From: Anthoceros angustus
Lineage: Eukaryota; Plantae; Anthocerotophyta
Length of the DNA stretch: 64,000 nt
Assembly (NCBI GenBank): GCA_010909165.1
Contig: MU008178.1
Span: forward strand, 1,004,369-1,068,368
Direction: 5' to 3'
This document shows, piece by piece, positions 5,561-60,084 of this stretch (positions are counted from its first letter, which is position 1; each line of letters opens with the position of its first letter). A program made the position numbers and the translations under genes. The notes below the pieces were generated by a model. The model was not told where the DNA came from, did no database searches, and worked only from the letters and a program-made list of their open reading frames with translations.

Positions 5561-7639
<2,079 letters not shown>

Positions 7640-15338: not shown

Positions 15339-16208
15339 CTAGCTCCATCCTGCTGACTGAAGAAGCTTCTCTGAAGGTGGTTGCAACCCTAGCTTGTCTT
15401 CATCCTCCTCGTCAATATCCTCCCTTAGGTCGGCTACGGTTAGACACACACCAAGAGGTTCAAGCAGGTATGGCGTGTCCATCACCACGGCCCCAAACAC
15501 TGGGTAGACGCTATTGGCCATGAGGTTCTTATGATCCTTGCCATGCAGCTGCAGAGGGATGCGAGCAATCCGTTCATCAGTTTTGCTCCAGCATCTCTAG
15601 CCTGGTCGATAGTAGATTGTCTCCGTCCACAAATCCGCCATCACTCCAGGTTTGTACAAAGCGTCCGCTCCTAGCAAGACATCAAATGTGTCTGCATTAG
15701 TGACCAAGCAATGTACCTCAACAAAGGTGAAGTCAGCTATTCTTGGTTTGAATGAAACTTTCAGCTTGTACCTCGTCACCTCCAACATATACTCTGGGGT
15801 CCCAGCTGCGGTCTGGATCCTCCACTTGGTTTCCTTCAACCTGTCTTGGTGGAGACCCAACGCTTCCTTCCCTCTTCTTCTAACAATCATCGACTGTGCT
15901 CCGGTGTCAATCAACACCAACCTTGGTGCGAATCCATTGATTTCAATGTGCATCTCCCGATTGTTGACCAAAACCACCCCTGCTCGTGCAACATTCCGCT
16001 TCTCCACATAAATGCTTGGCTCAGAGGTCAACAATAACATCATTGTTTTCTGCTGTAGCACATCGTGGACACTTGCTTCGTCTTCAAGAATTGTAGATCG
16101 CAAGGTTAGTCCCCTTTGGCACGGTGCCAATGGTTGGTTCTTTCCCTTTTTCGTTGTGAGGTCGATGGGTTTTTCCATCTTTACATAAAGTCTCCACATT
16201 CTCTCCAC
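15339..16208 (-). mobile_element. LTR-retrotransposon gag-pol fragment: retropepsin aspartic protease
   Basis: LVLIDTGAQSMIV catalytic motif plus downstream DVLLGAD; in-frame stops beyond. Confidence 0.8.
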
Positions 16209-16956: not shown

Positions 16957-19900
16957 ATGCGGGGTGTTTTCAGGATATCATGCCAAGTAGAGAACCTGTG
17001 CAAGGAGGGACTGTTAGACAAGGCACTGGCTGCCCTGCAATGCATGGACCAGCAGGGTTGTGTGCCTTCTGTGCATCTTTATAAGATACTCCTGCAGCTG
17101 TGCATGAAGAAGAAGGCCCTTGCTGAGGCTAAGCAGATATATTCCCATTTTGCAAATCATGGACGGGATTCAACCAGGTTCTTAAGTGATCTTGCGGTGA
17201 CCACATTGGTGAAATGTGGGGGCCTTGCTGATGGACTCCAGTTATTTCGAAGCCTTGCACGTCGAACTGTCTACTCTTGGACAGCCATTATCTCAGGGTA
17301 CATGAATGCTGGATTTTGTCGGGAGGCGGTCTTATGCTATGAGCAAATGCAGCAGGAAGGTGTGAACCCTGACAAATACACATTTGTCAGCCTACTCAAG
17401 GCGTGCAGCAGGTTAGAAGACTTACAAGAGGGCAAGCGTATCCATGCAGATGCCGTGAGATATGGGTATGACTCAGATGTGTTCGTCGGAAGCACCTTGG
17501 TGACCATGTATTCAAGCTGTGGGAGCATGGTGGATGCAGAACAAGTGTTTGACAAATTGTCCCAGCAAGATGTTGTGTCATGGACCACCATGATTGCCGC
17601 ATATGCTCAGCATGGTCAAGGAGAAAAAGCGTTGCAGACTTATTGGAGGATGCAAGAGGAAGGGGTTAGGCCCAACGCCTGGACGTGTGTCAGTGCTCTC
17701 CAAGCTTGTGGTGCCCTTGCGGAGAAGGAACAAAGTGCTGTTGTAGACGGACAGAATGTTAAATTGGAGTTTCTGCAGAACGTCAAAGGCATTCATGCTG
17801 AAGCTGCCGGGAGGGGTTTTGTGAGTGATGTATTTGTGGGTAGCACTTTGGTTAGGATGTATGCAAAGTGTGGGGGCATAATGGATGCTGAGTTTGTATT
17901 TCATCAGTTGTGCAAGCGTGATGTAGTTTTATGGACTGTGATGCTTGCAGCATACGCTCAGCAGGGACAGGGTGCAAAGGCACTGCACATTTTTCGGCAA
18001 ATGCAAGACGAAGGGGTCATGCCAGATGCTCAGACCTTTGGCAGCATTCTCCAAGCATGTGCCGTGATTGCAGAGCAAGAGGAAAGTGCATATGTGGACG
18101 GGTCATATGTGAAGACGGAGTCACTTCAGATAGGGAAGGAAGTTCATGCTGAAGCTGCAAGCATGAATTTCGACTCAGATGCATTTGTCGGTATGACATT
18201 GGTTAACATGTATACAAAGTGTGGCAGCATCAGGGACGCACAGCAGGTGTTTGACAAGCTGTCTCAGCGGGATGTGGTGTCATCGACTGCAATGATTGCA
18301 GCATACGCTCAGCATGACCAAGGACGAAAGGCCTTGCAGATTTATTGCAGAATGCAAGAGGACGGGGTCAGACCAGATACATGGACCTTTGTCAGTGCTC
18401 TCCAGGCTTGTGGCATCCTTGCTGAAAAAGAGGGACATGCCATTGTGGACGGTAGACATGTGCACGTGGAGTGTTTGCAGAAGGGGAAGAGTATTCATGC
18501 AGAGACTGTTAGGAGGGGTCTAGAATCAGATCCATTTGTAGGGAACACATTAGTTAGTATATACGCAAAATGTGGGAGCATGAAGGATGTAGAATACGTG
18601 TTTCTTGAATTATCTCACCGAGACAGGGTATCATGGAATGCAATGCTCACAGCATACATTCTACAGGACCAAGGTGAGGAGTGCTTACAGATCTATGAGG
18701 ATATGCAAGCAGAAGGCATCAGACCTGATGCCCGCACATTTGTTAGTGTTCTCCAAGCATATGGAATCCTGTCCGAGAAGGAGGAGGCTACACTGCTCGA
18801 TGGGCAGAATGTCAGGGTGGGCATGCTACAGAAGGGGAAGATATTGCATGCTGAGGCAGCGGGCAGAGGTTTCGGATCAGACATTTTCATTGCTAGCAGT
18901 TTGGTTAACCTTTATGGAAGATGTGGGAGCATCAAGAACGCAGAGCAGGTGTTTGATGGTTTGTCTGAGCGTAATGTAGTGTCATGGACAGCAATGCTCA
19001 CAGCATATGCTCATCAAGACAAAGGGGAAGAAGGATTGCACATTTATGAGCAGATGCGAGAGGCACAGGTCAGGCCGGATGCTCATACGTTTGTGGCTGC
19101 TCTCCAAGCATGTGGCAGTGTTGCGGAAGTAGAAAGCAGTGCACTTGTGGATGGTCAAAACATCAAAGTGGAGTCCCTGCTCAGGGGAAAGGACATACAT
19201 GCAGGAGCTGCAAGTATGGGCTTTGAATCAGATGTCTTTGTTGGTAGCACTTTGGTCAGCATGTATGCAAAGTGTGGGAGCATCAAGGATGCAGAGCAGG
19301 TGTTTGACAGATTATCCCAGCGCAACGTGGTCTCATGGACTGCGATGATTGCCGCATGTGCGCAGCAGGGACAAGGAGAAAGGGCTTTGCAACTATTTGC
19401 CCAGATGCCAACAGAAGGTATAGAACCAAATGAGGCTACATTTCTCGCTGTCCTAGAAGCTTGTGGCACTACAGGGGCATTGAACGTCTGCCGGCAGACA
19501 CACCGTATTATTTTGGAGAGAGGGCTTGAGCACAGTCCTTTCGTGGGGAACAGTCTAGTTCATGCGTTTAGCAAATGCGGAAGCATGCAGGAGGCTCAGG
19601 AAGTTTTCGACTCACTCTCTGACCCCGATGTGGTGTCATGGAATGCGCTGATCGGTGGCTATGCCCGCAATGGAGGTGTGGAGAACAGTTTAAGATGCTA
19701 CGAGGACATGCATCTGGCAGCTGTGAAACCAGACAGATACACATTCATAGCCCTGCTTTCCGCCTGCAGTCATGCCGGGATGGTGGACAAGGGATTGGAA
19801 TACTTCGAAGCCATGAGCAGAGAGCACGGCATTCCTGCCGAGCTGGAGCACTATGTCTGTATTATGGACCTCGTGGCTCGAGCCGGACTGTTCAGCAAGG

Positions 19901-20301
19901 CTGAGGATTTGCTGTCGGGAATGCCAATGGAGCCTGATCTGCGCGTGTGGCTTTGTTTGTTGGGTGCATGCCAGAAGCACGGTAACGTGCTCCTGGGAAG
20001 ACGGGCCTTCGACGGTGCCGTGGGCATAGATCCAGAACATGCTGCGGCCTACGTGCTCATGTCAAACATCTACGCCCATGTTGGCATGTTTCACCTCGCA
20101 AAGGAAGTTGACGAAATGAGACAGGAAGCCGCGGCCTGGAAGGAGCCCGGGGAAAGCTGGATCGAGTATAGGCAGGAGGTGCACACATTCCTGGCGGGAG
20201 ACAAGAGGCACCAACAATCCGCTTTGGTGGATGGGTTGCTGAAAGAGCTAAGCGCAAGATTGAAGGACCCGGGGTCATTCGAGCAATTGTGTCACCTGTA
20301 G
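16957..20301 (+). CDS. PLS-class pentatricopeptide repeat protein with five long 'LL' motifs, E1/E2 and E+ (PG box), no DYW deaminase; organellar RNA-editing specificity factor
   Basis: 1114-aa ORF of P-L-S triplets (DVVSWTTMI../PDxxTFVSxLxAC../DVFVGSTLVxMYxKCG); C-terminal VWLCLLGAC, AAYVLMSNIYA, KEPGESWIE..HTFLAGD; true 5' end may include an upstream exon. Confidence 0.93.
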   Translation: MRGVFRISCQVENLCKEGLLDKALAALQCMDQQGCVPSVHLYKILLQLCMKKKALAEAKQIYSHFANHGRDSTRFLSDLAVTTLVKCGGLADGLQLFRSLARRTVYSWTAIISGYMNAGFCREAVLCYEQMQQEGVNPDKYTFVSLLKACSRLEDLQEGKRIHADAVRYGYDSDVFVGSTLVTMYSSCGSMVDAEQVFDKLSQQDVVSWTTMIAAYAQHGQGEKALQTYWRMQEEGVRPNAWTCVSALQACGALAEKEQSAVVDGQNVKLEFLQNVKGIHAEAAGRGFVSDVFVGSTLVRMYAKCGGIMDAEFVFHQLCKRDVVLWTVMLAAYAQQGQGAKALHIFRQMQDEGVMPDAQTFGSILQACAVIAEQEESAYVDGSYVKTESLQIGKEVHAEAASMNFDSDAFVGMTLVNMYTKCGSIRDAQQVFDKLSQRDVVSSTAMIAAYAQHDQGRKALQIYCRMQEDGVRPDTWTFVSALQACGILAEKEGHAIVDGRHVHVECLQKGKSIHAETVRRGLESDPFVGNTLVSIYAKCGSMKDVEYVFLELSHRDRVSWNAMLTAYILQDQGEECLQIYEDMQAEGIRPDARTFVSVLQAYGILSEKEEATLLDGQNVRVGMLQKGKILHAEAAGRGFGSDIFIASSLVNLYGRCGSIKNAEQVFDGLSERNVVSWTAMLTAYAHQDKGEEGLHIYEQMREAQVRPDAHTFVAALQACGSVAEVESSALVDGQNIKVESLLRGKDIHAGAASMGFESDVFVGSTLVSMYAKCGSIKDAEQVFDRLSQRNVVSWTAMIAACAQQGQGERALQLFAQMPTEGIEPNEATFLAVLEACGTTGALNVCRQTHRIILERGLEHSPFVGNSLVHAFSKCGSMQEAQEVFDSLSDPDVVSWNALIGGYARNGGVENSLRCYEDMHLAAVKPDRYTFIALLSACSHAGMVDKGLEYFEAMSREHGIPAELEHYVCIMDLVARAGLFSKAEDLLSGMPMEPDLRVWLCLLGACQKHGNVLLGRRAFDGAVGIDPEHAAAYVLMSNIYAHVGMFHLAKEVDEMRQEAAAWKEPGESWIEYRQEVHTFLAGDKRHQQSALVDGLLKELSARLKDPGSFEQLCHL

Positions 20302-20677: not shown

Positions 20678-21364
20678 CTAGTGGCGGCGACGGTGCCTCC
20701 GACGCCGGTGTCTGCGATGCCTTCTCTTGCCCCTCTTGCCCTTGCGGCGACGATGGTGGCGACGGAGCCGTCTCCTTTTCTTGCGGTGCCGCCTCCCGCG
20801 CCGGCGCTTTTTGTGTCTCATTTTGCGTCTCCTCTTCCTGCGCCGGCCTCCCTTCCTCCTCCTCCTCCGCTTCCCCTTCCCCTTCCCCTTCCTCCTTCCC
20901 TTCCTCCTCCTGCGTCGTCTGTGCCTGCGGCGTCGGCCCACGCGGTGGCCTTTGCGTCGTCGCCGCTTCTTTCCCTCACCTGCGTGCGGGAGCTTGTACC
21001 CCGTCTTGCCCTTCACTAGCTTGCCGGTTCTCACGGCGCGGCGGAGCTGGCGCATAAGGTGCTTGCGGAAGCCCTTGGGCATCCCGCCCGGGTGGTGCTT
21101 GTACTTGTCCACGCAGAATCTGATGACCGTCTTGAGCTTCAGCCCATTGCGCTTGTGGATGTGGGCGAAAGCGTCGCGGATGATCATCTTGTAGGTCGGG
21201 TGGCCCTTGTGTCGGGTGCCACGCCGGGAGTGGTGCTTGTGGCGCTTGTGTCCATGGGCGCTTTTGCTCCTGCTCCTGCTCCTGCTGTGGCTTCCCCGCC
21301 GCCGTTTTCTGTGATGGTGTACCGGCGCTGCAGCCGGAGCTGCAGCGTGCGCGACCCCGTCCAT
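20678..21364 (-). CDS. Protamine-like sperm nuclear basic protein: histone H1 globular (winged-helix) domain with Arg/Lys/His-rich tails, intronless
   Basis: HPTYKMIIRDAF..NGLKLKTVIRFCVDKY..FRKHLMRQLRRAVRTGKLVKGKTGYKL (H1/H5 globular pattern); N-terminal SRSRSRS; C-terminal ~95 aa almost only R/K/H/G. Confidence 0.88.
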   Translation of the reverse strand: MDGVAHAAAPAAAPVHHHRKRRRGSHSRSRSRSKSAHGHKRHKHHSRRGTRHKGHPTYKMIIRDAFAHIHKRNGLKLKTVIRFCVDKYKHHPGGMPKGFRKHLMRQLRRAVRTGKLVKGKTGYKLPHAGEGKKRRRRKGHRVGRRRRHRRRRRRKGRRKGKGKGKRRRRRKGGRRRKRRRKMRHKKRRRGRRHRKKRRRLRRHHRRRKGKRGKRRHRRHRRRRHRRRH

Positions 21365-21657
21365 GGATCAATTCACTCCGATTCCCCCTCAGGCCTGGGC
21401 TCCATGGCTGCACACTGGTGCTCCGCGATGCGGGCTGCGATTTCGGCAGGGTGTCCACCCTCTGAGGGTCCCGATTCCTTGGCGCCACTTGGCCTTCCAG
21501 CCGCTTTTAAAGGCTGCGCCCGCGCCCCGAGCTCGCCATTGGTGGCCTTGCCGCCGCCACGGATCGCGCTGCGCCTGACGGTCAGGATTTGCTCCAGCCG
21601 CCATGGATTCCAGCAAGCGTCGCGCTCCATGCGACGCAACGTTCGGGGTTGAGGCCC

Positions 21658-21733
21658 AACCGACTTACCGGCCAACCGCTGTCATGTTCAAGGGATACCA
21701 ACCGTTAACGATCTCCGGTGGCCTTGAACCGTC
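21658..21733. promoter_or_regulatory. Cluster of four AACCG (MYB/DUO1-type) sites upstream of the protamine-like gene
   Basis: AACCGAC 21658, AACCGCT 21674, AACCGTT 21700, AACCGTC 21727; the last three fit AACSGYY (RRCSGTT on the gene strand). Confidence 0.65.
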
Positions 21734-23267
21734 GGGTCAGTCTTGGGGGAGAGCGAGAACCTCCGGCCGAGGGGATGTCTAGTGAGCGCTTAGGGCATCG
21801 AGGAGCCGTGGGCAGGAGGAGGAGATCTCTAGACAACTGGGCGGGGGAAGGAACATCTTTGGATCGATACATGCAGGTAGCACCCGGTCGGCGCGGCATC
21901 GGACGGCCGGGATGTGGTGACAGGTTTAAGGACTGGTCTGACGATCGTGCATCGTCTTCCTTGTACAAGGGTTCGTGTTTCTTTCATGCCTCATATGAAC
22001 ACATGTGCCTTTGTTTAATTGCAGGGTAGGAGTAAGTGGTCGATCGGCGGCACCTCGTCGCTGCCACAGGTGCGGGATCTCAGGTAAGTATACTAATCCA
22101 ATTCTTATTGAGTGCATTGTGCAAGGTGTCGAGGCCAAGTCGCCAATTTTGCAAGCCGTGACAGCCTCCGAGGTACAGGTATTCCAAGACAAGCAGGTTC
22201 ACAAACTCATGCACTGACGGGGACATTAATCAACTGTAACAACACAACCTAGGCCTCTTACTTGTTGAGAATATCCAGCAAGATCTGGTGGTGATACCCT
22301 TGGAAGTATGAGATAGTCCAGTTTAACTATTTGACTCGACACTTGTCCTTAGACATGTGACTGCACGTCGACTTATGTTCCTTGAGTCAGTAATATATAG
22401 ACCCTTTCATGTTCTTAAGCTATGTATGTACTCGGTCGCTCGCTCTCTCGGGACCGCAATTCTTAGTTCTCACCTAGCCTGACAAGGTAACAACTCCGTC
22501 AGACAGTGTAAGGGCCTCCAGCACACACGCACGCACCGAGCCAGTAAGAGGTCTGAACCTTCAAGCTTTTACTTCCTACTCTTCTCAGGGGCAGGTGATT
22601 AGATACCGACAACAAAGGCTGTAAGAGATCTTTTTCAATTATTAATTCGTCGTTAGAGGTAGGTATAATCTTGGTGTATACCCATGCAGAGCCTGTAAGA
22701 AATCAATTCACGACCTATTTATTTGTCGTTGGAGGCAGATATTACCAGACAAAGAAAGAAACTCCAGTACAACTTTGACATCCGCCCTTGAATGTACCCC
22801 CAAGACTGACGGTAGGTTTACCTTTGCCTTGTACCCAGACCTGATTAGCGATAAGCGCCAGAGTCTGTTCGTCCCTTTCACCCTGAGGGGCCTGAGGCCA
22901 TCTGAGAGGATCTCCACACTCCAAGTGGTAGAAGCAGAAACAGCTCACCATCGAAGGTAAAGGTTCCCAGGTAGAGGTGTTCCAATCCTGTTGATATAAG
23001 GTGAGGCGAAACCATAACTAACCTGGCATAGTTCCCCGGTATATCCAAGGACCAATCTACTTCATGAAGCCATTGACAAGCTGCACATAAGACTGAGTGC
23101 CATGCGTAGGACCAAGAGTGCCCCAAACAGTACCCCAGGTGAGGATAGGTAAGAGATAATCTAACATCGTACTTCCCTTCTGCAATTCAGAAGCACATTC
23201 CCTAAAAGATACCTCATGTCATGACCGTACAGGAAGAACTGTCAAAGTTTGCGAACTGAGGAGGGCC

Positions 23268-25565
23268 TTACATTTGCACCGTATTTTTTTTCTCGAACTT
23301 TTGGGCAAAATTTCTCAACACTAGAGCATCTCTGAAAGAGAAGTAGTCTTCGAGACTTGCTTTTGCCCAATGCTTACAGTAGTAGTCATCCGTAACTGCA
23401 AGACATTTCATTGGAAAAGGCCCCTTTGGTAACCTCTGCAAGGCTATCAGAAATCTGTGTCGGGGTTTGATCCTCTGGTCAAGAGACAAAGAGAAATAGG
23501 CTGGAAAGCTGACCACTGTTTGCACTCCACCCTTGAGTTCCCTGACTAGATACGCGTACTTGGGCTTCAGAGAGTTCTCAACAGACAACGAAAATACCTG
23601 CAAAATTGGTACAAGCTCTCAACCTTAGCAAGAGCAGTGACTTGTCACGGCAAAGTATAAGATCAAGACAGATAATAAGCTAACACAATGACCGACAAAC
23701 CTAGTATACCTGTGTCATCCGCGTGAGGACCTTCAAAACGTCCTCTTCACTCATACCGATACTCCTCAGGAACTCAATTCGTGGTCGAATACCCTCCTCA
23801 ACGCTGTAGTGCAACAGTTGTGGATGTTTTGTGACGATCTTCGCCAGAGTCACCTTTGTCACTTTCATTTCCTGTAAGAAAAATTCTACTTGAGGCTCCA
23901 ATGACTCTTCGATGCTCTGAGTCAGTACTTGAGGGCTCCTTGTCACCACTTTGGGGATGTCGAATTCGCTAATCCCCACAACTTTCCGTAGAAAGTCAAC
24001 TCTAGGTTTCAGAGAGTTCTTAAGACTGCACTCCAGTATCGAAGGCCTCACCCTTATCATCTTCCCTACGGTTACTTCAGGTATCCCCAGGCTCCTAAGG
24101 TATTCTATCTTCGGTTTTACCATGCTGTCAACTCTATACTCCAAAATTTGTGGATGCTTTACTATCAACTTACTCAAGAACTTAGATTTAATACCCAAGC
24201 TTCCTAAGAACTGAACTCTACCTTTCACCGCATCCACTCTAAGTTGTAAACAGGCCCTATTACGTTCAGCAATCCTTTGAAGGTCTTCATCCCCTAGACC
24301 TAGTGAGAGGAGGTATTCCACCAGTGGCAGGTACTTGTCATCTATGCTAAGTTGCCTTTGTAAAGACTCGAGCCTTGTATCTACAATATTACTGCTATCC
24401 ATCTCCTGCAAGGGCAAACAATTGTCACAGCTTGCTGAAAATATCACACCCCACAGAACCCAATGTGCTGCCTAAAATGCTCAGCTTTCGCTACCAGAGA
24501 TACTCCAAACAGTCAGGGCGTGGTTGTCAACAAACTCAAATCTTCTGCTCTGATTCTCATAGCTAGCAGTAAATCGATCCTACCAGACGTCAGTCAGCTA
24601 GCATACCCAAATTTTTTACTGGAGCAGAACCAGGGCCAAGATTGTGATTCTTACATTAGGTGGCGCTCGTAGATAGGAGAACGGCTTTCGTGGCATTCTC
24701 CTCATCGAGGAACTCGATGGTTTGGTTGTCCGCTGGCCCTCTTTTTGTGGGGCAGTGAGCCTAAAGGTTGTGACATTTTGATATTTTGGCTGTCGAACCA
24801 TTCGATACACTTGCTCTTCCCACTGCTTCCTCGATAGGGTCCCCTGCCGCTTGTCCAAAGTCAAAGATCCACGAAGATTGACCTTCTGTGCATGTCCAAG
24901 CGGGTATTGCACCTTTAACTCTTCACTATCAGCCTTCCTGATGATTCCATGTCCCTTGTTCTGTTCCGCATTCAAGGTGCTGACGGGTTTGCCAGTGGAT
25001 TTCAGATTAGCTCTTCCCACCTTGTTCCCTTTCCTCAACCCACCCCTTTGGACATTCTCTGGCAACTCAGAAATCTGCGAGTCTTCCAATCCTGACTCCA
25101 CATCCTGTACCGACAGAACCATAATAGTGGACACCTCACCGTAAGTCTCATTGGGTAGAAGGGTGTGGATTCAGCGAGATAACCAACTTGCCTCATCTCT
25201 ATATACTCAAATCATCAAATGCTTGTTGCCTACTGCCTGTCAGTGATGCTCACGACAGGTACAGTGAGCCCTGATAAATGCAAGGTGTTCAAGAATGTGA
25301 CCTGAGAATCAACATCAAAGGAGAGGAGGCTCTCATCTTCATCTTCAGGGCTGAAAGTCAGCAGCGGTTGACCATACCGGGAGCGCCGATTGGGCTTGGA
25401 GATCTGAGGATTCGACTGCACAGAGACTGCAACTTCAGCACGCTCACCCGACGGCTGCCAAGGAACCCAGGCTGCGAAGCTGCTCGGAGGACCAAGGCAG
25501 AAGAAGGAAGACTGCAACCTGGGCGAGCTTGAAGGTGCGCACCACAACGGAGGGGCCAAAGCCAT
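23268..25565 (-). CDS. Organellar mTERF protein, mTERF9-like (about 4 exons)
   Basis: mTERF repeats (HPQILEYRVDSMVKPKIEYL, SPQVLTQSIEESLEP, HPQLLHYSVEEGIRPRIEFL), YFSLSLDQRIKPRHRFL..KGPFP; plastid-transit-like N-terminus with SNP..RRSRYG. Confidence 0.9.
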
Positions 25566-26948: not shown

Positions 26949-39120
<12,172 letters not shown>

Positions 39121-49425: not shown

Positions 49426-50050
49426 TCACCGTATCACGTTCCCGTGCTGCCTCACTACGTCCGAACCCTTCGTCCTCCATTCGTGGATGATCCTCGCGCA
49501 TTCCCCATTCCCGAAAAAGCTCGTCATAGGTGAATCAAGTAACCCCTTCAATGTCCGCCGCCTCCTCGTCAGCGTGGTCCGGCTCCTCCTTGTCAACGTC
49601 CAGTGCTTGGCTCGTTGAGGCGTCCACCCGGAAGCAGTCAATCACCTCCGCTCCAAAGGCGTCCCTTCGATAATCCATCTCTTCCTCGGACCACCGGATT
49701 TTGGAGAAGGGGTATGCTTCGTGCGTGCTGTCGCATTCGGCATCAGTAGTGTCCTCGGCGGAGGTATACCCGTCAGTGGTGCTCGCAGTCTCCCCACAGT
49801 ACGTGTTCTTGCTCCAGGTGATCGCCACTCTTCCTTCTCTCACCTTGGGATCCCAGTCCACCGGTTTGAAGTGGATTTCTTTCCTTCCGAAGTGCAGTTT
49901 CGTTTGAGCCAGACCGAGCCAGGGTCGTCCCACCAGCACCTCATACCCCAAGGGTCCTCTAGGTTTGATGACTACGAAATCCAACGTATACGGTGCGCCA
50001 GCTATGTAGTATGTGAAGGAGGGGGACCTGGCTTCCTTTACGACAGTCGC
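49426..50050 (-). mobile_element. Gypsy-like protease C-terminal half and downstream linker (fragment)
   Basis: LDFVVIKP..YEVLVGRPWL motif; catalytic DTG/DSG half absent. Confidence 0.65.
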
Positions 50051-50054
50051 CACA

Positions 50055-50229
50055 TATATTTTCCAGGCAAGCTTCACCTAAGATGGATGGGCCCATACCA
50101 AGTGGTGCAGATAGGACCACGCCGGGAACTGGCCATGGGGCCACTCGCACGTGCATAGTGAGCAGGCAATAAGACCGATTTAGGAGTGTAATAAAGGCAC
50201 TACCTCGGAACGTAGTGTAAGAGGGGGGT
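50055..50229 (+). mobile_element. Gypsy-like integrase C-terminus (GPY/F motif) followed by a polypurine tract
   Basis: FPGKLHLRWMGPYQVVQI; AAGAGGGGGG at 50219-50228, followed within 2 nt by TG. Confidence 0.65.
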
Positions 50230-51780: not shown

Positions 51781-52923
51781 AAATTTCCAGGGAGTATGGA
51801 AGTAACACTTATAGAGCGTTAACATTTATATAAGGCACATTTTTCGAGGGTAGAGTGTATCTCAAACTACCGTTACGTGAGCCCACCTCCCCGTGTGACA
51901 GGGGCAGTGGGGATGCAGACCTTCCGTGAATGTATGCCCTAAATGTATGAAAACTTTCTTTCCCACCCTGCACGAACATTTTCCATTCCACGAACTGGAT
52001 CCAGACTCCCTCCATACGGGATATGATGGATGAGAGGCCATGCAGGCCATCGGCGGCGGCCTATGTGACGAGGCAGCAGCAGGCCGGGCCGAGGGCCGAG
52101 GGCCCCAAAAGAATCCAGAGCTGGAGAAGGCACGGCCGACACGCGGTCGGTGCAGCCCACCACGGCAGCGCGTTTGGAGGTCCACGAGGACGCGTGTCCA
52201 GCTCGGATCTCGCGTGCTCACGCGAACCCGCTCGAGGAGTAAAATAAAAACACGTATATCTGTGCACAATAATAAGTGTGTCAGGAGGCGGGCGTGGAAT
52301 GGATGCAGGATTCCAGTTCCAGAAGCACCTCGGAGGCCCTCCGCTGACAGTTACAGTGACACCGCTCTAGCCTGCCGCACATGGGTCAGGATGGCCAGGT
52401 TTGGCAGGGCCTCCAGTCTAATCTCCCTCTCCCTGGGATGGAAGTTGAGGGAACGATCCAGCATCGTACTCCTGGCGTGAAGAAACCCCACCGCGGGCCG
52501 GCGATCCGATCGCTCTTGGGCGGGTCGAGCTCCAGCTGGTGCGGGCCCTCTGCACTGCGAATGCGTCGCCCTGGGCTGCGTGTGTGTCGCCCAACTTGGC
52601 CAGCATGGGGGATGAGGTCTTGAGTCGCTGCTCCCGTCATCCGTGCCACTCGGATTTGATCGCTACTGCGTCCTGGATATGGCCCGGATAGGGGACGCCG
52701 GTTGCCGCTGCCCGGAAGCCACAGCCTGAGCAGTTTCGCCGCCGCCGCCCTCGCCGCCTGCTGTGCTAGGCTGCGGGCATTGCCTGCCAGAGGGGTCCGT
52801 GGGCCGGGGGGAGCTTGGAGTTGACGGTAGCCAGGGTTGCTGGGTTCGGGCCGCCATGGCGGCGCACTGAGCTTGGCCGAGGTGGGTCAGCAAGGGCAAT
52901 TTTGGGTGCTAGCTAGCTTCAGC

Positions 52924-54782
52924 ATGAGCTCGCAGGAGAGTGTGAGATGGGGCTCGGATGGGGGGTCGCAGGAGGAGGCCCCCAGCTACATGAAAGTGGC
53001 CACGGGGAATCTGGTGGCCTCGCTGCTGCGCGATAACTCGGACACGGTGCCTGATGTGTTTGTGCTGAGAGAGCGGGGCCAGCCGGATGGACCTGGACCT
53101 GGACCTGGACCTGGAGTGGAGCACGCGGGTGTGCCCATTTTTGATCTCGCTGCTCTGGGGAAGGAGGCGGGTACGCCTGAGCACGACAGGCTGGTTGCGG
53201 ACATCGTGAGATCGAGCAAGGAGTGGGGTTGCTTCCAGATTACCAATCACGGAATCCCCCTGGAGCTCGTGGAAGAAGCCCGGCACCAGGTTTTCCGGTT
53301 CTTCTGCCTGCCCTTCTCCCACAAGGCCCGGATTTTCTCGCCTCCCAACAGCTTGATGGGTTACGCGTGCGGAGGGAATCGTACGTCTGGTTTTCTATGG
53401 CAGGAAGGGTTGGCGATCAATGCCACGGAGGAGTGCCTGGTGGATTGTGCACGGAAGGTATGGCCTGAAGGGAACGATGAATTCAGGTATACATTCACCC
53501 CACCCCCGCATCCCAGGACTGGCGTTTGCTTGCTGCCTGCTGATGCACCTGTCGTCTAGGTTTGATGGGTAGTTGGACCTGCTCTTTCTTCTACAAGATA
53601 AAGAATGTGTGAGGATGGAAAGGAAAAATGTCAGACACAGTCGCTAGTTCATGCTTCTTCATGGTTGTCTGCCGCCCAAGGACCACCTCACAGCATTTGA
53701 TGCTTCATAGGTTCCGGGTGTTTGAAAAGCTGGCTTTAGCTTACCAAATGCCTGCCAACTTACGGACTAACTATGGGGGGTAAAGTAGTGGATGTACTAC
53801 AAATGCCTTGTCGCGCACCTGCGTAGTTGTGCTTCCTACTGTCTCTCACTCCTTGTTTGGGCCTTTGCAACAGTCGTGTGGTGGGAGCCTACGTCAACTC
53901 AGTCTCTAAGCTTGCCATGCAGCTTCTAGAGATCCTCACAGCTGCTTTGGGAGCGAGTGATCCTCATTTTTTGAACAAGGTCTTTGTGCCTGGATCTTCC
54001 ACCGTTAGGTTCAATTACTACCTGCCATGTCCTCAACCCTCCGCCACGTATGGTTCCAGTCCGTTAACAGATATCCAAGTTCTTGCCATTGTGCACCCTG
54101 ATGAAGTGGCAGGCTTGCAAGTGAAGAAGGACGGGAAATGGATCCCTGTGCACTCACGAGCCGACTCGTTTGTTGTCAACATTGGCGATGCTCTTCAGGT
54201 ATGCAGTCTGGGGGCCCGCCTCGGAGTCTTTGTGCTAGGTTACTGCTCCCTTTGGTCTCTACATGGTTGTAGTTGGCTAGTTTTCAAGTCTGCCAGCTGT
54301 TAAAGTGGTAGGGATACCTTTTCAGTCCTCCACCTGTCTGCAAACAGTTGCTCGTGGGATCTTCTTAGCCAGCAACACCTGAAGTGTTTACACTCTACAC
54401 TTCACAGGATGCCATCTAGCCACCTGCCAGTGCCTGAAGTCTATGCTCTTGAGGTGGTTAGTTAGGGCAGAGTACACGACAAATCTGATGCCCTCGCTTG
54501 CCTCCTGCGGTGCAGGTATTCAGCAATGATAGATACGTGAGCGTGGAGCATCGAGCCATCGTGAACACAAGCACAACATGGCTGACGATGGGTTACTACT
54601 TGACCCCATCAGATGAGACGGGAGTCACTCCTCCACCGGAGCTGGTCACCTCTGAACATCCCCAGCTTTACAAGCCATTCACCTATGCAGAGTACAGCAC
54701 CCGGATGTGCAACAAGGTGTTGTCACCAGTGTTCAAGTACCTGGGAAAGACGGCGCTCAACAGGTATCGACTCGGTGGGTAG
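52924..54782 (+). CDS. 2-oxoglutarate/Fe(II) dioxygenase (DOXC), catalytically divergent; exons 52924-53486, 53874-54198, 54516-54782
   Basis: DIOX_N (VPIFDL..EWGCFQITNHGI), NYYLPCPQP, GLQV..W..FVVNIGDALQVFSNDRY.SVEHRA; HxD reads L-T-D and RxS reads W-L-T. Confidence 0.88.
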
Positions 54783-55171: not shown

Positions 55172-57334
55172 TTACATTTCGATGACAGTCCTCTGATAGC
55201 CTCTTTCCGCCACCAGCCGGTCCAAGTAAGCCAGAACCGCGTCTCGCCGCTTCATGAGCTGCTCGACCTCGTCCTGCGAGAGAAAGCCCTGGAACCTCTC
55301 CGCCACCTCCTGCTTCTCCAGGAAGCGCAGACGGAGATAGGTTTTGGCGGAGACGCAGCGCACGGGCCCGGTCTGGAAGGCGTTCTCGTCCGTGAGGGAC
55401 ACCACGGCCTCTTTGCGGAATCCGGCCGCGTGGTCGATGAGCACCGGGAGGGACTTGAAGCGGTCGGCCCAGTGCTCGCCGAAGAGGAAGTGGCCGTGGT
55501 GGCGGTCGCTGTTGTTGAGCAGGCAGTCGAGGATGCGGGTATCGCTGAGGAGGCGGGCGACCGGTACGCCCCAGTTTGTCGCCGGGACTCGCTTCAGCTC
55601 CTTGCTGTTGCGCACGTAGTAGACGAAGGCGCCCTCCTGGAAGTGCTTGGAGCACTTGAGCTCGATGCGGCCGCGGCGGTAGGCCACCGGCGGGACGTAG
55701 TCCATACCCAACAGCAGGTTGAGCTCGTACGCCACCCACTCCACGGGCGCCCGGTGCCAGCCCTCGGCGTCCCCGTACGCCCGCGGCTTGAACAGCGCTT
55801 CCATCTTCTCCCCCGTCCGCTCCTCCTGCAGCTGCACGATGAAGCTCTCGTGGCCGAATTTGCTCGGCGGGTCCATTGGCCGGGATCCCACGATCTTGCC
55901 GTGCGCCAGGATGTCGACGATGCGAGCGTGCCGCTCTGCGCACACCGGGTCTGCAGAGAGCCGGGACTGCTGGATCCGAGAATGCCGCACCGCCTGCGCC
56001 GTCTCCACCAGAGTCTGCATCGCCAGAGCCACGTAGTCGTCGCTGTCCAGGCCGGTGATGAGGCAGCCATCGCCAGTGCACCGCACCGAGGTCTCCATGG
56101 TCACCACCGCGGTTTTTCTCAAGTCGTCCTTCTTTATCACCGTCTTGGTGCAGGAGAGCGCGCCCGGATGTGCCACAACGCATTCCATGCTCTCCGAGAG
56201 GCTGGTCATGGAGCTCACATCCATCTCGTCGTCTGTGGTCTGCTCGGACGTCTCCCCCTCGGACTGCTCCGACTCCGAGCTCGACTGCTGCAACCCGTTC
56301 GAATTCGTGTTCCAGCCGTCATCCGAGCTGCGGCTCTCTTTGAGGTAATTGGCGATGTCCGCAATGTCCCCGCTCGCCTGGTCCTCCACCTCGCAGGCAG
56401 CGTCATCCTCGGATCCGGAGCTCGAGTCGGTGGCGCGTTGCAGCTCCTGAATCAGACTGGTTGACTTGCGGACTTGACCCTCGGACCGCTTCACCTCCTC
56501 CAGCTTTTGCATGATGGCCAGCTTCTTGAGCTTCACCGCCTCGATCCTGGCCTCCTGCGCTTTGGAATTGAGGGACTTGGTGGTCTCCAGCAGCAGCTCC
56601 TGGAAGTCCTTCATCTGCTTGCTCATCACCTCGTTCTGGATCTGAATGGTGTGGATGTTGGAGAGAATGCCCTGCAAATCCACATCCAGCTGGCCGGCGT
56701 TGTCCTGAGACTGTTGCAAGGCGGAATCCAGGCTGAATTTGATGCTCCCGGAAGCAGAATGTGGGGCTCCGACAAGCAACTGCGGCCCTGAGCTGCTCTC
56801 CACGTCCGGAGCCACATCAAGCAGGCCTCCGGCGGGAGCAACATTGATGGGAGATCCTGCAGCAGCAGCAGTAGTGCCAGGAACCGAGAGAGGGGACGGT
56901 GAAGCACTGAGATAAGGGGAACTTGCCTCATCGGTAACAGACGAAAAATCGGAGCCCGAGTTGGAGAGCGAGTGGCGCGTCATGCGGTATTGACTCAATC
57001 CCGCTGGAGAGTAGCGCATACCCAGCGCCACCTTAGCGGGAGTGGTACAAGGCGCAGCAGCGCTGGCACCGCCAGTGGAAGATGCGGGAAAGGAAAAAGA
57101 CACAGTGAGAAAAGGCGAAGCTCCGGTTCCGGTTCCGGTTCCGGCTCCGGCTTCGGCTTCGGCTCCGGCTCCAGCCACAACTCCTCCTCCTCCTCTTCCC
57201 AGGCCCTGCATCAAATTGAAACCCCGGTTGTGCCCGCACAGCTGCTGCTCCTTGATCCGGAAGCCAGACCGGGGAGAAGAAGCATCGGACACTACTGTGA
57301 GCCATAGCTTGTTGGCATGTGCCACCACCTCCAT
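55172..57334 (-). CDS. Intronless atypical kinase (PI4K type II/Fam20-like fold) with long low-complexity N-terminus and a coiled coil
   Basis: ALFKPR, EWVAYELNLLLGMDYVPP, ILDCLLNNSDRHHGHFL, VLIDHAAGF; first ATG at 57334 within a 725-codon open frame. Confidence 0.78.
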   Translation of the reverse strand: MEVVAHANKLWLTVVSDASSPRSGFRIKEQQLCGHNRGFNLMQGLGRGGGGVVAGAGAEAEAGAGTGTGTGASPFLTVSFSFPASSTGGASAAAPCTTPAKVALGMRYSPAGLSQYRMTRHSLSNSGSDFSSVTDEASSPYLSASPSPLSVPGTTAAAAGSPINVAPAGGLLDVAPDVESSSGPQLLVGAPHSASGSIKFSLDSALQQSQDNAGQLDVDLQGILSNIHTIQIQNEVMSKQMKDFQELLLETTKSLNSKAQEARIEAVKLKKLAIMQKLEEVKRSEGQVRKSTSLIQELQRATDSSSGSEDDAACEVEDQASGDIADIANYLKESRSSDDGWNTNSNGLQQSSSESEQSEGETSEQTTDDEMDVSSMTSLSESMECVVAHPGALSCTKTVIKKDDLRKTAVVTMETSVRCTGDGCLITGLDSDDYVALAMQTLVETAQAVRHSRIQQSRLSADPVCAERHARIVDILAHGKIVGSRPMDPPSKFGHESFIVQLQEERTGEKMEALFKPRAYGDAEGWHRAPVEWVAYELNLLLGMDYVPPVAYRRGRIELKCSKHFQEGAFVYYVRNSKELKRVPATNWGVPVARLLSDTRILDCLLNNSDRHHGHFLFGEHWADRFKSLPVLIDHAAGFRKEAVVSLTDENAFQTGPVRCVSAKTYLRLRFLEKQEVAERFQGFLSQDEVEQLMKRRDAVLAYLDRLVAERGYQRTVIEM

Positions 57335-58649
57335 AGCCAGCAGCTTCAAGCCAGGCTATTAGGCAGTGAAAATGAATCTTGAGCGGCTCAACAAGCCTAG
57401 CCCGGCGCCGACGCCTCCTCTTTCCCGCCTCCGGCTCCTCACCGTCACAAAAGGGAGCCGGGGGAGACGGAGCGACCGCAACAATTTCTGTTGCTGTGCG
57501 GCGGTAAGGATCGTCCTCTCGGTATCATCGTCTCAAAGAGTGGATGAGAAAAATTTCAAGATTCAGTCTCCCCTCCCCGCTCCTCCCACTTGAGCTTATC
57601 CCCTCCTGCAAGAAACGCACACTGGCCCGAGCAGCCGCGCACGCTGAAACCCCAGGCGCAACATTCGCGTGAATTCTCCAAGCCGGGAGCTTCTTGGAAC
57701 GGGAAACGAGATTTTTGCACAGCACACGAAAGGACCAGGGATCAGCCTCACCTTCACTGTCCGGATGCACCTTCCGGATGAGGCGATCTGTGTGAATCAG
57801 GCAGTCATGCCCGGCGCGGTGACAGCGTGACACTTCCTTCCCCGGGCCGCCGCTCCCCGCTCCCCACTGCCCGGCCCGTGCTGGAGTGCCAGGTGCAACC
57901 AACCAACTGGTGCGTGATTTACAATTCCGCGCTTGCAATGCTAACTTGGTGTGGAGGCCATATGCATGGACCATGGTGAAGCGGTCAGAGGCTGCCAGTG
58001 CCGGAGGCGGGCCCGATCTCACTGTGTGCCCATCCCCGTGCTGAGACACTGTTTGGATCTGCATTAGGCACCTCATCAGCCCTGATTACCCTCCCGAATC
58101 CGACCAGAAGAGCTGCCGCACCGCACACCAAAATATCGCCCTCGTCCTGATTGCAGATATTTCACGCAAACCTGCCAGCCGGAGCCCCATTGGCCGGAGA
58201 GCAGGGACGGCACTGGCCTCCAGGCATCCGGCCCCGGCCCCGGCCCAGTTTCCCAAAAGCGAAAGCGTAACGTGCAACAGAACTCGACCGGGGCCCGGGG
58301 GCCCCGCCCGGCCCGAAAGAAGCGGGAAAGAATCGTTATCGGGATCCTGTGACACACAAGCCACGCCGGCCAAAGCGCCCGGTGAAGTGAACTCTGCCGC
58401 GAGAGAAGAACCCAAAACAAAGGCAACGCAAGGACGGAAGAAGCGAGTCGTGAAACAACCACAAATCGCGACCCCGTCAATCTTACTCTTGTGCAAATCT
58501 TACTCACGGTAAATAGATAACGCCGTCTCGTCTTCTGAATCGGAAGCCACAGTGGGCAGAGATCCGTGTCAGCGGGTGGCGTGAAGATTCGTCTCCCGCA
58601 ATGTTCTGTCTTGGGGGGCATTTGAGCTGGTAGCTCGGGACGAGTCGTC

Positions 58650-60084
58650 ATGGCGGCGGTGGCGATGCCGGGCGCCATGGACGGGCTGGCCCCGGGCTTT
58701 CTGTGGCCGCCCCCCCCAGCGATTCTGAAGGAAATTGATGAGAAGGAGGAGGAGCAGCAGCAGCAGCAGCAGGATGTGCCGCTCTTCGACCTCTCTATTC
58801 TTGAGGGTGGGGGCGAGGCGGGCAGGGCGAGGCTGGCGCGGGAGGTGGGGCAGGCGGCTCGGGACTGGGGCTTCTTCCAGATCGTGAACCACGGCGTGTC
58901 GTTGGACCTCGTGGAGCACGTGGAGGCCCTGGCGCGATCCCTGTTCGCGCTGCCCTTCGAGCAGAAGCTGGCGGGGTGCTGCCCCGGCCCGTCGGATGGA
59001 TCCTCCGTGGGATACCGGGTCGGGGGCGTCCCCGAGCCCCTGCCGCGTGCACCCGTCCTGCGCAGGAGCTCCTCCAACCTCTTCCTGTGGCAGCAGAACT
59101 TCACCGTCTTCAACGACCCCGGGATTATCCAGCACTACTCCAACAGAATCTGGCCCGACCCCGACCGAGCCCAGGAATTCAGGTATCCAGCTGCAGGCCC
59201 GGCGTGCGATGTGATTCCGTTGTCAAAATTCATCCCTTGGCAATGCGCTTGCTGATCGATCACCGGAATGGATGGGATGGGATGGGATTGGATTGGATTG
59301 GATTGGATTGGATTGGATTGGATTGGGTTGCATGGAACACAGCGCCAGGCTGGGGGAGTACGTGATGGCGGCGGAGAAGGTGGCGAAGCAGATGGTGGAG
59401 CTGCTGACGGAGGCGCTGGGGCCCGGGGTGGAGCGGGATTGCATCACGCGCTACTGCGGCGGCGCGGACAGTTTCACCACGCACCGTCTCAATTTCTACC
59501 CCAACTGCCCGGAGCCGTCCAAGAGCATCGGCGTGGTGCCGCACTCCGACCCATCCGTGCTCACCGTGCTGCACCAGGACCACGTGGGCGGGCTCGAGAT
59601 CCTCAAGGACGGGCGCTGGGTTTTCGTGAAGCCGCATCCCGGGGCCTTCGTCGTCAACGTCGGGGACATTCTCCAGGTGACCATCCCAATCGTCTCGTCT
59701 CTCGCTCACCGACGTCGTAAGCGCTGAATTCATCTCAATGCTGGTGGACGTGTCTGTGTTTAATTTCGTGCTGCTGGGTTGCAGGCTGTGAGCAATGACG
59801 TATATCCCAGCGTGATGCATCGAGCGCAGGTGCATCCCGACACGCCCAGGCTGTCCATGGCCTTGTTCTACTCCCCCCTCAAGGACGCCACCGTGGCGCC
59901 CTTGCCCCAGCTGCTCGACTCTCACCACCCGCCCGTTTACAGGCCCTTCACCTACGCAGAATACCTCGCCTTGTTCAAATCGCGGCAGCCCAGCAGCAAC
60001 AGCCTCCTTGCCTACGTCAGGGCAGATTTTTGTGACGACCGTCGGCAGACCAAGGACTACGGTAGCGAGGATGTTGATTCTTAA
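58650..60084 (+). CDS. 2-oxoglutarate/Fe(II) dioxygenase (DOXC), canonical active site; exons approx. 58650-59183, 59344-59676, 59785-60084
   Basis: VPLFDL..DWGFFQIVNHGV, NFYPNCPEP, PHSD (HxD), VMHRA, RLS (RxS). Confidence 0.92.
59270..59324. repeat. Compound (GGATG)n(GGATT)n microsatellite in intron 1 of the second 2OGD
   Basis: Direct reading. Confidence 0.95.

Follow-up and report, generated by a model that had tools for sequence, protein, structure and literature searches.

A probable H1-derived, protamine-like sperm protein encoded in the genome of the hornwort Anthoceros angustus

Sperm condensation in bryophytes and ferns relies on protamines or on protamine-like proteins (PMC9668745). 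In Marchantia, three papers that cite the original work of D'Ippolito 2019 (PMC13251019, PMC11607694 and 10.1101/2025.03.22.644562) describe the protamines as cleavage products of H1 histones specific to sperm, and the expression of MpPRM depends on MpDUO1, a dependence reported as genetic only (PMC6290024). That protamines derive from histone H1 is a long-standing hypothesis, for which the direct plant evidence comes from one liverwort. Protamines derived from H1 have thus been published for a bryophyte, and the kind of system described here is not new; in the literature we searched, which did not extend to the primary Marchantia protamine papers, we found no description of a hornwort protamine. 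A second bryophyte lineage carrying a near-pure protamine tail on an H1, the gene being preceded by clustered DUO1 sites, would tell whether sperm compaction in plants had one origin or several.

A linker histone domain in an arginine-rich protein

In the 64-kb stretch of the Anthoceros angustus genome that we analysed (the window), a minus-strand open reading frame that requires no intron encodes a protein in which arginine makes up 32% and lysine 15% of the residues (Table 1). Open reading frames on the plus strand of the same segment were set aside as shadows of this frame, being Pro/Ser/Cys-rich antisense readings with a stop in the plus frame. The Pfam family PF00538 (Linker_histone) matched aa 55-122 with 27.6 bits (curated cut-off 22.4; E = 3.6e-6), and the GH1 winged-helix domain recognised in this way places the protein in the linker histone H1/H5 family. 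When the domain was used by itself in a full HMMER scan, 62 proteins matched at E<=0.001, most of them 33-45% identical to it and none close, and those that bear a name are plant histone H1. All 62 are Lys/Ala/Pro-rich, and in none of them does arginine exceed 10%, as compared with 32% in the Anthoceros protein.

Table 1. Features of the protamine-like H1 gene and its upstream region (positions within the window)
Feature	Position	Strand	Description
CDS, H1-derived protamine-like protein	20678..21364	-	ATG at 21364, stop codon ends at 20678; 228 aa, intron-free, 28 kDa, R+K 48%, net charge ~+105
N-terminal arm, aa 1-54	21203..21364	-	Ala/Pro-rich leader, followed by a region rich in His/Arg/Lys; contains all seven serines of the protein
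RS block, aa 25-35	21260..21292	-	11 residues; candidate SR-protein-kinase sites
Linker-histone globular (winged-helix) domain, aa 55-126	20987..21202	-	Core and basic residues retained; G-L-K in place of the plant G-S-S
Non-basic linker, aa 127-131	20972..20986	-	Five residues; E130 is the final acidic residue of the protein
Protamine-like C-terminal tail, aa 132-228	20681..20971	-	97 aa, ~13 kDa; 73 Arg+Lys, 10 His, 11-12 Gly
GC-rich, CpG-undepleted island	20678..21900		GC 0.63-0.65; CpG o/e 0.91-0.95 vs 0.42-0.62 in neighbouring genes
DUO1-consensus cluster (predicted sites)	21658..21733	-	Three exact RRCSGTT at 21674-80, 21700-06 and 21727-33; near match at 21658-64
CCAAT-like element	21542-38	-	178 bp upstream of ATG; consensus likeness only
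TATA-like element	21511-05	-	147 bp upstream of ATG; consensus likeness only
Upstream ORF, ten codons	21373..21405	-	Strong start context; stops 8 bp before the main ATG

Alignment of the domain with 57 of the 62 matches revealed that its hydrophobic core is kept, as are the basic residues (K/R) at aa 82, 101, 108, 115, 118, 120 and 124, and that the invariant G-S-S motif of plant H1 is replaced by G-L-K. The domain is more basic than these 57 relatives (22 K/R, including 9 Arg, vs means of 16 and 2.6), and it contains the only cysteine of the protein, C84. A structure model (pLDDT 79) consists of three helices and a short wing; its top structural matches are H1.0/H5 (probability 1.0, TM 0.67-0.76, E 0.002 or weaker), and its TM against plant H1-like Atlas clusters is 0.85. 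Because the model was built on an alignment of H1 sequences, this agreement is not independent of the sequence match, and we regard the predicted structure as compatible with the H1 fold. The linker-histone winged-helix core named in the original prediction is thus borne out by the Pfam score, the plant H1 matches and the H1.0/H5-like model together.

Searches for closer kin returned little. A word-index search found no orthologue with either the domain or the whole protein, a blank that is uninformative on longer or shorter kin; the exact protein sequence was absent from the protein collection searched, a PDB sequence search gave no significant match, and MpPRM was absent from the matches of every homology search we ran. 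A metagenome scan with the single domain had no matches, and one with the domain alignment recovered 73 H1 loci, every one of them with a Lys-type tail (Arg <=11%). In a tree of the domain the query sits on a branch of 4.29, as compared with a median of 0.36, and cannot be placed, as the long branches meet; a branch of this length is as expected for a fast-evolving sperm protein. When compared by language-model features, which we treat as a lead only, the nearest Atlas clusters were mollusc H15 (0.90), one named protamine-like (0.84) and histone H5 (0.83).

The presence of histone H5 among the nearest proteins, by features and by structure, could point to an Arg-rich H1 variant that acts like erythrocyte H5 in other condensed or dormant cells, such as those of spores or desiccated tissue, and the cell type is not deducible from composition alone. 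H5-type and stress-type H1 tails retain Ala, Pro and Ser, however, none of which occurs in the tail of the Anthoceros protein, and the promoter carries a cluster of DUO1-consensus sites (see below). We therefore consider this explanation improbable.

The protein has seven RS/SR dipeptide steps, and six of its seven serines fall inside a single RS block, a comparable version of which is absent from all 62 plant H1-type matches; the block is a candidate substrate of SR-protein kinases. The original prediction of an SR-repeat N-terminus holds in so far as the RS block is present, but this block spans only 11 residues and no long repeat domain exists. RS dipeptides and Arg/Gly-rich low-complexity stretches, both found here, are typical of RNA-associated proteins, and the globular domain has lost its otherwise invariant G-S-S motif, as might be seen in an RS/Arg-rich nucleolar or RNA-binding protein that uses its H1 domain as a chromatin anchor and replaces no histones. 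Such a function is very unlikely, given the brevity of the RS block, a net charge of ~+105 over 228 residues, a tail lacking both acidic and aromatic residues, and the lack of any RNA-binding family among the Pfam results.

Composition and coding constraint of the tail

The tail was predicted to comprise ~95 aa of nearly pure R/K/H/G, with arginine in place of the Lys/Ala/Pro of normal H1 tails, and both expectations were confirmed. Within its 97 aa, R+K+H account for 85%. Over aa 133-228 the composition is R 57%, K 18%, G 11% and H 10%, only three residues are of other kinds, and there is no Ala (0%), Pro (0%), Ser, Thr, Cys, Asp, Glu or aromatic residue. The R+K+H share of 0.85 lies far outside that of nucleotide shuffles (mean 0.32, maximum 0.45; n=5000), and the runner-up among 96-codon stretches across the window reaches 0.46.

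All six kinds of arginine codon are present in the tail (32 CGN and 23 AGR), which argues for selection at the level of the protein. We rejected a simple-repeat origin of the tail on the same ground, as a DNA repeat would not yield all six. In 38 of the 41 positions that are not arginine the residue is K, H or G, vs an expectation of 29-41% had one-step changes in Arg codons been retained at random (P<1e-11); the test is a rough one, since it takes arginine as the background, yet the difference is wide. Selection has kept Ser, Pro, Leu, Cys, Trp and Gln out of these positions, and K, H and G are the three one-step neighbours of arginine that fill its non-Arg positions. On a plain reading of the sequence, the histidines may be taken as tolerated basic stand-ins for arginine. 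The suggestion that they serve as Zn ligands is weakened accordingly: histidine is a one-step neighbour of arginine, and the tail, with its 10 His, has no Cys. The joint occurrence of Cys and His in the Arg-rich part, which defines Zn protamines of the P2 type, was not found, and His-only binding of Zn by the tail may be envisaged.

A frameshift origin of the tail was also rejected. Neither of its two alternative frames is Lys/Ala/Pro-rich (Lys 4%) or reads as an H1 tail, and a normal H1 tail recently shifted in frame is therefore not its source. The possibility that the gene is a decaying H1 retrocopy, its tail a functionless product of simple-repeat slippage or a frameshift, draws on the missing intron (two canonical plant H1 genes that we inspected have one of ~90 bp), on the long branch in the domain tree and on short purine-rich repeats in the tail, but it is very unlikely in view of the open frame of 228 codons, the domain's retention of its hydrophobic core and of its basic residues, a GC3 of 0.92 in the domain, the mixed Arg codons, the unlikeness of the other tail frames to an H1 tail and the promoter-like CpG island.

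Predicted DUO1 sites, the upstream region and neighbouring genes

The DUO1 consensus is RRCSGTT (PMC6290024), a short MYB-type motif. Upstream of the protamine-like H1 gene, the DUO1-consensus sites all read in the same direction as the gene: three exact ones share a 60-bp span, 310-370 bp ahead of the ATG, and with the near match included the cluster spans 294-369 bp upstream. The window holds 20 distinct RRCSGTT sites, about half of the number expected from shuffles, and these three form its densest cluster. The occurrence of at least three sites in the 500 bp upstream had P=0.009 in 5000 dinucleotide shuffles, which take local CpG richness into account, with a weaker enrichment over longer spans (P=0.05 at 1 kb, 0.15 at 1.9 kb). 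A simulation of the tight spacing of three sites gave values of 2e-5 to 1e-3, depending on span and density, which ignore local composition and refer to a span picked after the data had been seen. We rejected the possibility that the cluster is a by-product of tandem repeats, as no repeat family covers it. Whether DUO1 binds the promoter of a protamine gene could be examined directly at this cluster.

Between the predicted DUO1 sites and the coding sequence lie TATA-like and CCAAT-like elements (Table 1). A short upstream ORF begins downstream of the TATA-like element, in a start context stronger than that of the main ATG. Delayed translation is common for protamine messages, and this upstream ORF is a candidate translational brake that could impose such a delay.

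A perfect 14-bp inverted repeat (21736-21749 and 22797-22810, arms 1047 bp apart) adjoins the cluster; the DNA inside it contains no long ORF and could be the remnant of a small transposon. The genes of the window are compact, and those next to the protamine-like H1 gene are of plant type. On the other side of the protamine-like H1 gene, and convergent with it at a distance of 376 bp, lies an intron-free PPR gene of the PLS/E class (16957-20301, plus strand; 1114 aa, no DYW domain). Five to six of its triplets measure 117 aa instead of 101, a mark, in our reading, of the long-L PPRs found in hornworts, lycophytes and ferns; a literature search for a link between such triplets and a lineage yielded no usable paper. 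A spliced mTERF gene (23268-25565, minus strand) has a best match that is 57% identical and clusters with Physcomitrium MTERF9. As judged by eye, the window also includes a plastid GAPDH with a CP12-like C-terminal extension, of the GapB type (5561-7639, minus strand), a very large multi-exon gene with the look of a BEACH/WD40-domain protein (28284-39120, plus strand) and two retrotransposon aspartic-protease-like fragments (15597-16208 and 49535-50077, minus strand). Two 2-oxoglutarate dioxygenase-like genes (52837-54590 and 58650-59727, plus strand) flank a long minus-strand ORF (55172-57349), coiled-coil towards its N-terminus and kinase-like towards its C-terminus, the exact sequence of which was absent from the protein collection.

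Proposed function and relation to known sperm proteins

The gene is best explained as encoding a PL-type nuclear basic protein that descends from H1 and packs DNA in the swimming sperm of a seed-free land plant, a reading to which we assign a probability of about three in four. The protein combines an H1-related winged-helix core with an Arg/Lys-rich composition between that of H1 and that of protamines, and none of the defining features of PL-type proteins that we tested failed; the Lys/Ala/Pro-rich C-terminal tail of canonical somatic H1 is not present. Of the sperm-condensing protein originally proposed, the H1 origin and the protamine-like composition stand, and the role in sperm gains independent, though indirect, support from the DUO1-consensus cluster and from the Marchantia literature.

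In the mechanism that we envisage, the clustered RRCSGTT sites would allow DUO1, a sperm-lineage MYB factor, to activate the gene in spermatids. By analogy with animal PL proteins and protamines, the RS block would be phosphorylated, keeping the protein soluble until loading, and the winged-helix domain would then load it onto linker DNA in the manner of H1. The 97-residue Arg-rich tail is expected to neutralise and cross-link DNA, displace histones and condense the sperm nucleus. It might further be cut at the short linker, as in Marchantia, to give a free protamine of ~13 kDa; we put the chances of such cleavage at about even, and the five residues of aa 127-131 would be the sole obvious place for it. 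A bolder version, in which DUO1 acts directly on this gene, MpPRM finds its hornwort counterpart in it, a module leading from DUO1 to an H1-derived protamine dates back at least to the bryophyte ancestor, and one genome holds the steps from H1 through a cleavable precursor to a free-standing protamine gene, is tentative and in our view rather doubtful.

Canonical plant somatic H1 has the same tripartite layout as the Anthoceros protein, with a globular domain that is 30-45% identical, and differs in its Lys/Ala/Pro tail, its G-S-S motif and its intron, as opposed to the Arg/Lys/His/Gly tail, G-L-K motif and intron-free gene of Anthoceros. Bivalve PL proteins carry RS repeats, and an RS block N-terminal of the core is common to the animal PL type and the Anthoceros protein, in which R+K amount to 48%. 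A winged-helix core with Arg/Lys-rich arms is likewise shared with animal PL-type proteins (bivalve PL-I and the H1/H5-like precursors of tunicates and spiders; PMC11607694, PMC10046793). In the Anthoceros protein, however, serine is limited to the short block, the tail is far purer in arginine and the core is of the plant H1 type, and because of this core we regard the likeness as convergent. For a tunicate sperm protein a frameshift origin has been described, of which the Anthoceros tail bears no sign.

A histone H1-like protein of the lycophyte Selaginella moellendorffii (XP_024539071.1) is also encoded by an intron-free gene and has a divergent H1 domain (35% identity over 69 aa), an Arg-rich tail (26% R, 19% K) and many RS dipeptides. 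It differs in that its tail retains Ala, Pro and Ser, with almost no His, and that its RS block is C-terminal; a DUO1-site cluster was sought at its gene and not found, and its grouping with the Anthoceros domain in the tree reflects the meeting of long branches. Arg-shifted, intron-free H1s are nonetheless present, by sequence, in a second seed-free lineage. The Selaginella protein, annotated merely as histone H1-like, is itself a candidate lycophyte PL-type sperm protein.

MpPRM and the male-germ-specific H1 precursors of Marchantia polymorpha (Higo 2016; D'Ippolito 2019), as represented in PMC6290024, PMC13251019 and 10.1101/2025.03.22.644562, are likewise H1-derived, Arg-rich and from a seed-free plant. 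They belong to another lineage than the hornworts, and cleavage and C-terminal di-aminopropane modification are, in the same sources, features of Marchantia; the Anthoceros tail, by comparison, extends to the C-terminus and lacks both Asp and Asn. The link to DUO1 is a genetic dependence in Marchantia, and in the Anthoceros gene a candidate one, in the form of a promoter motif cluster.
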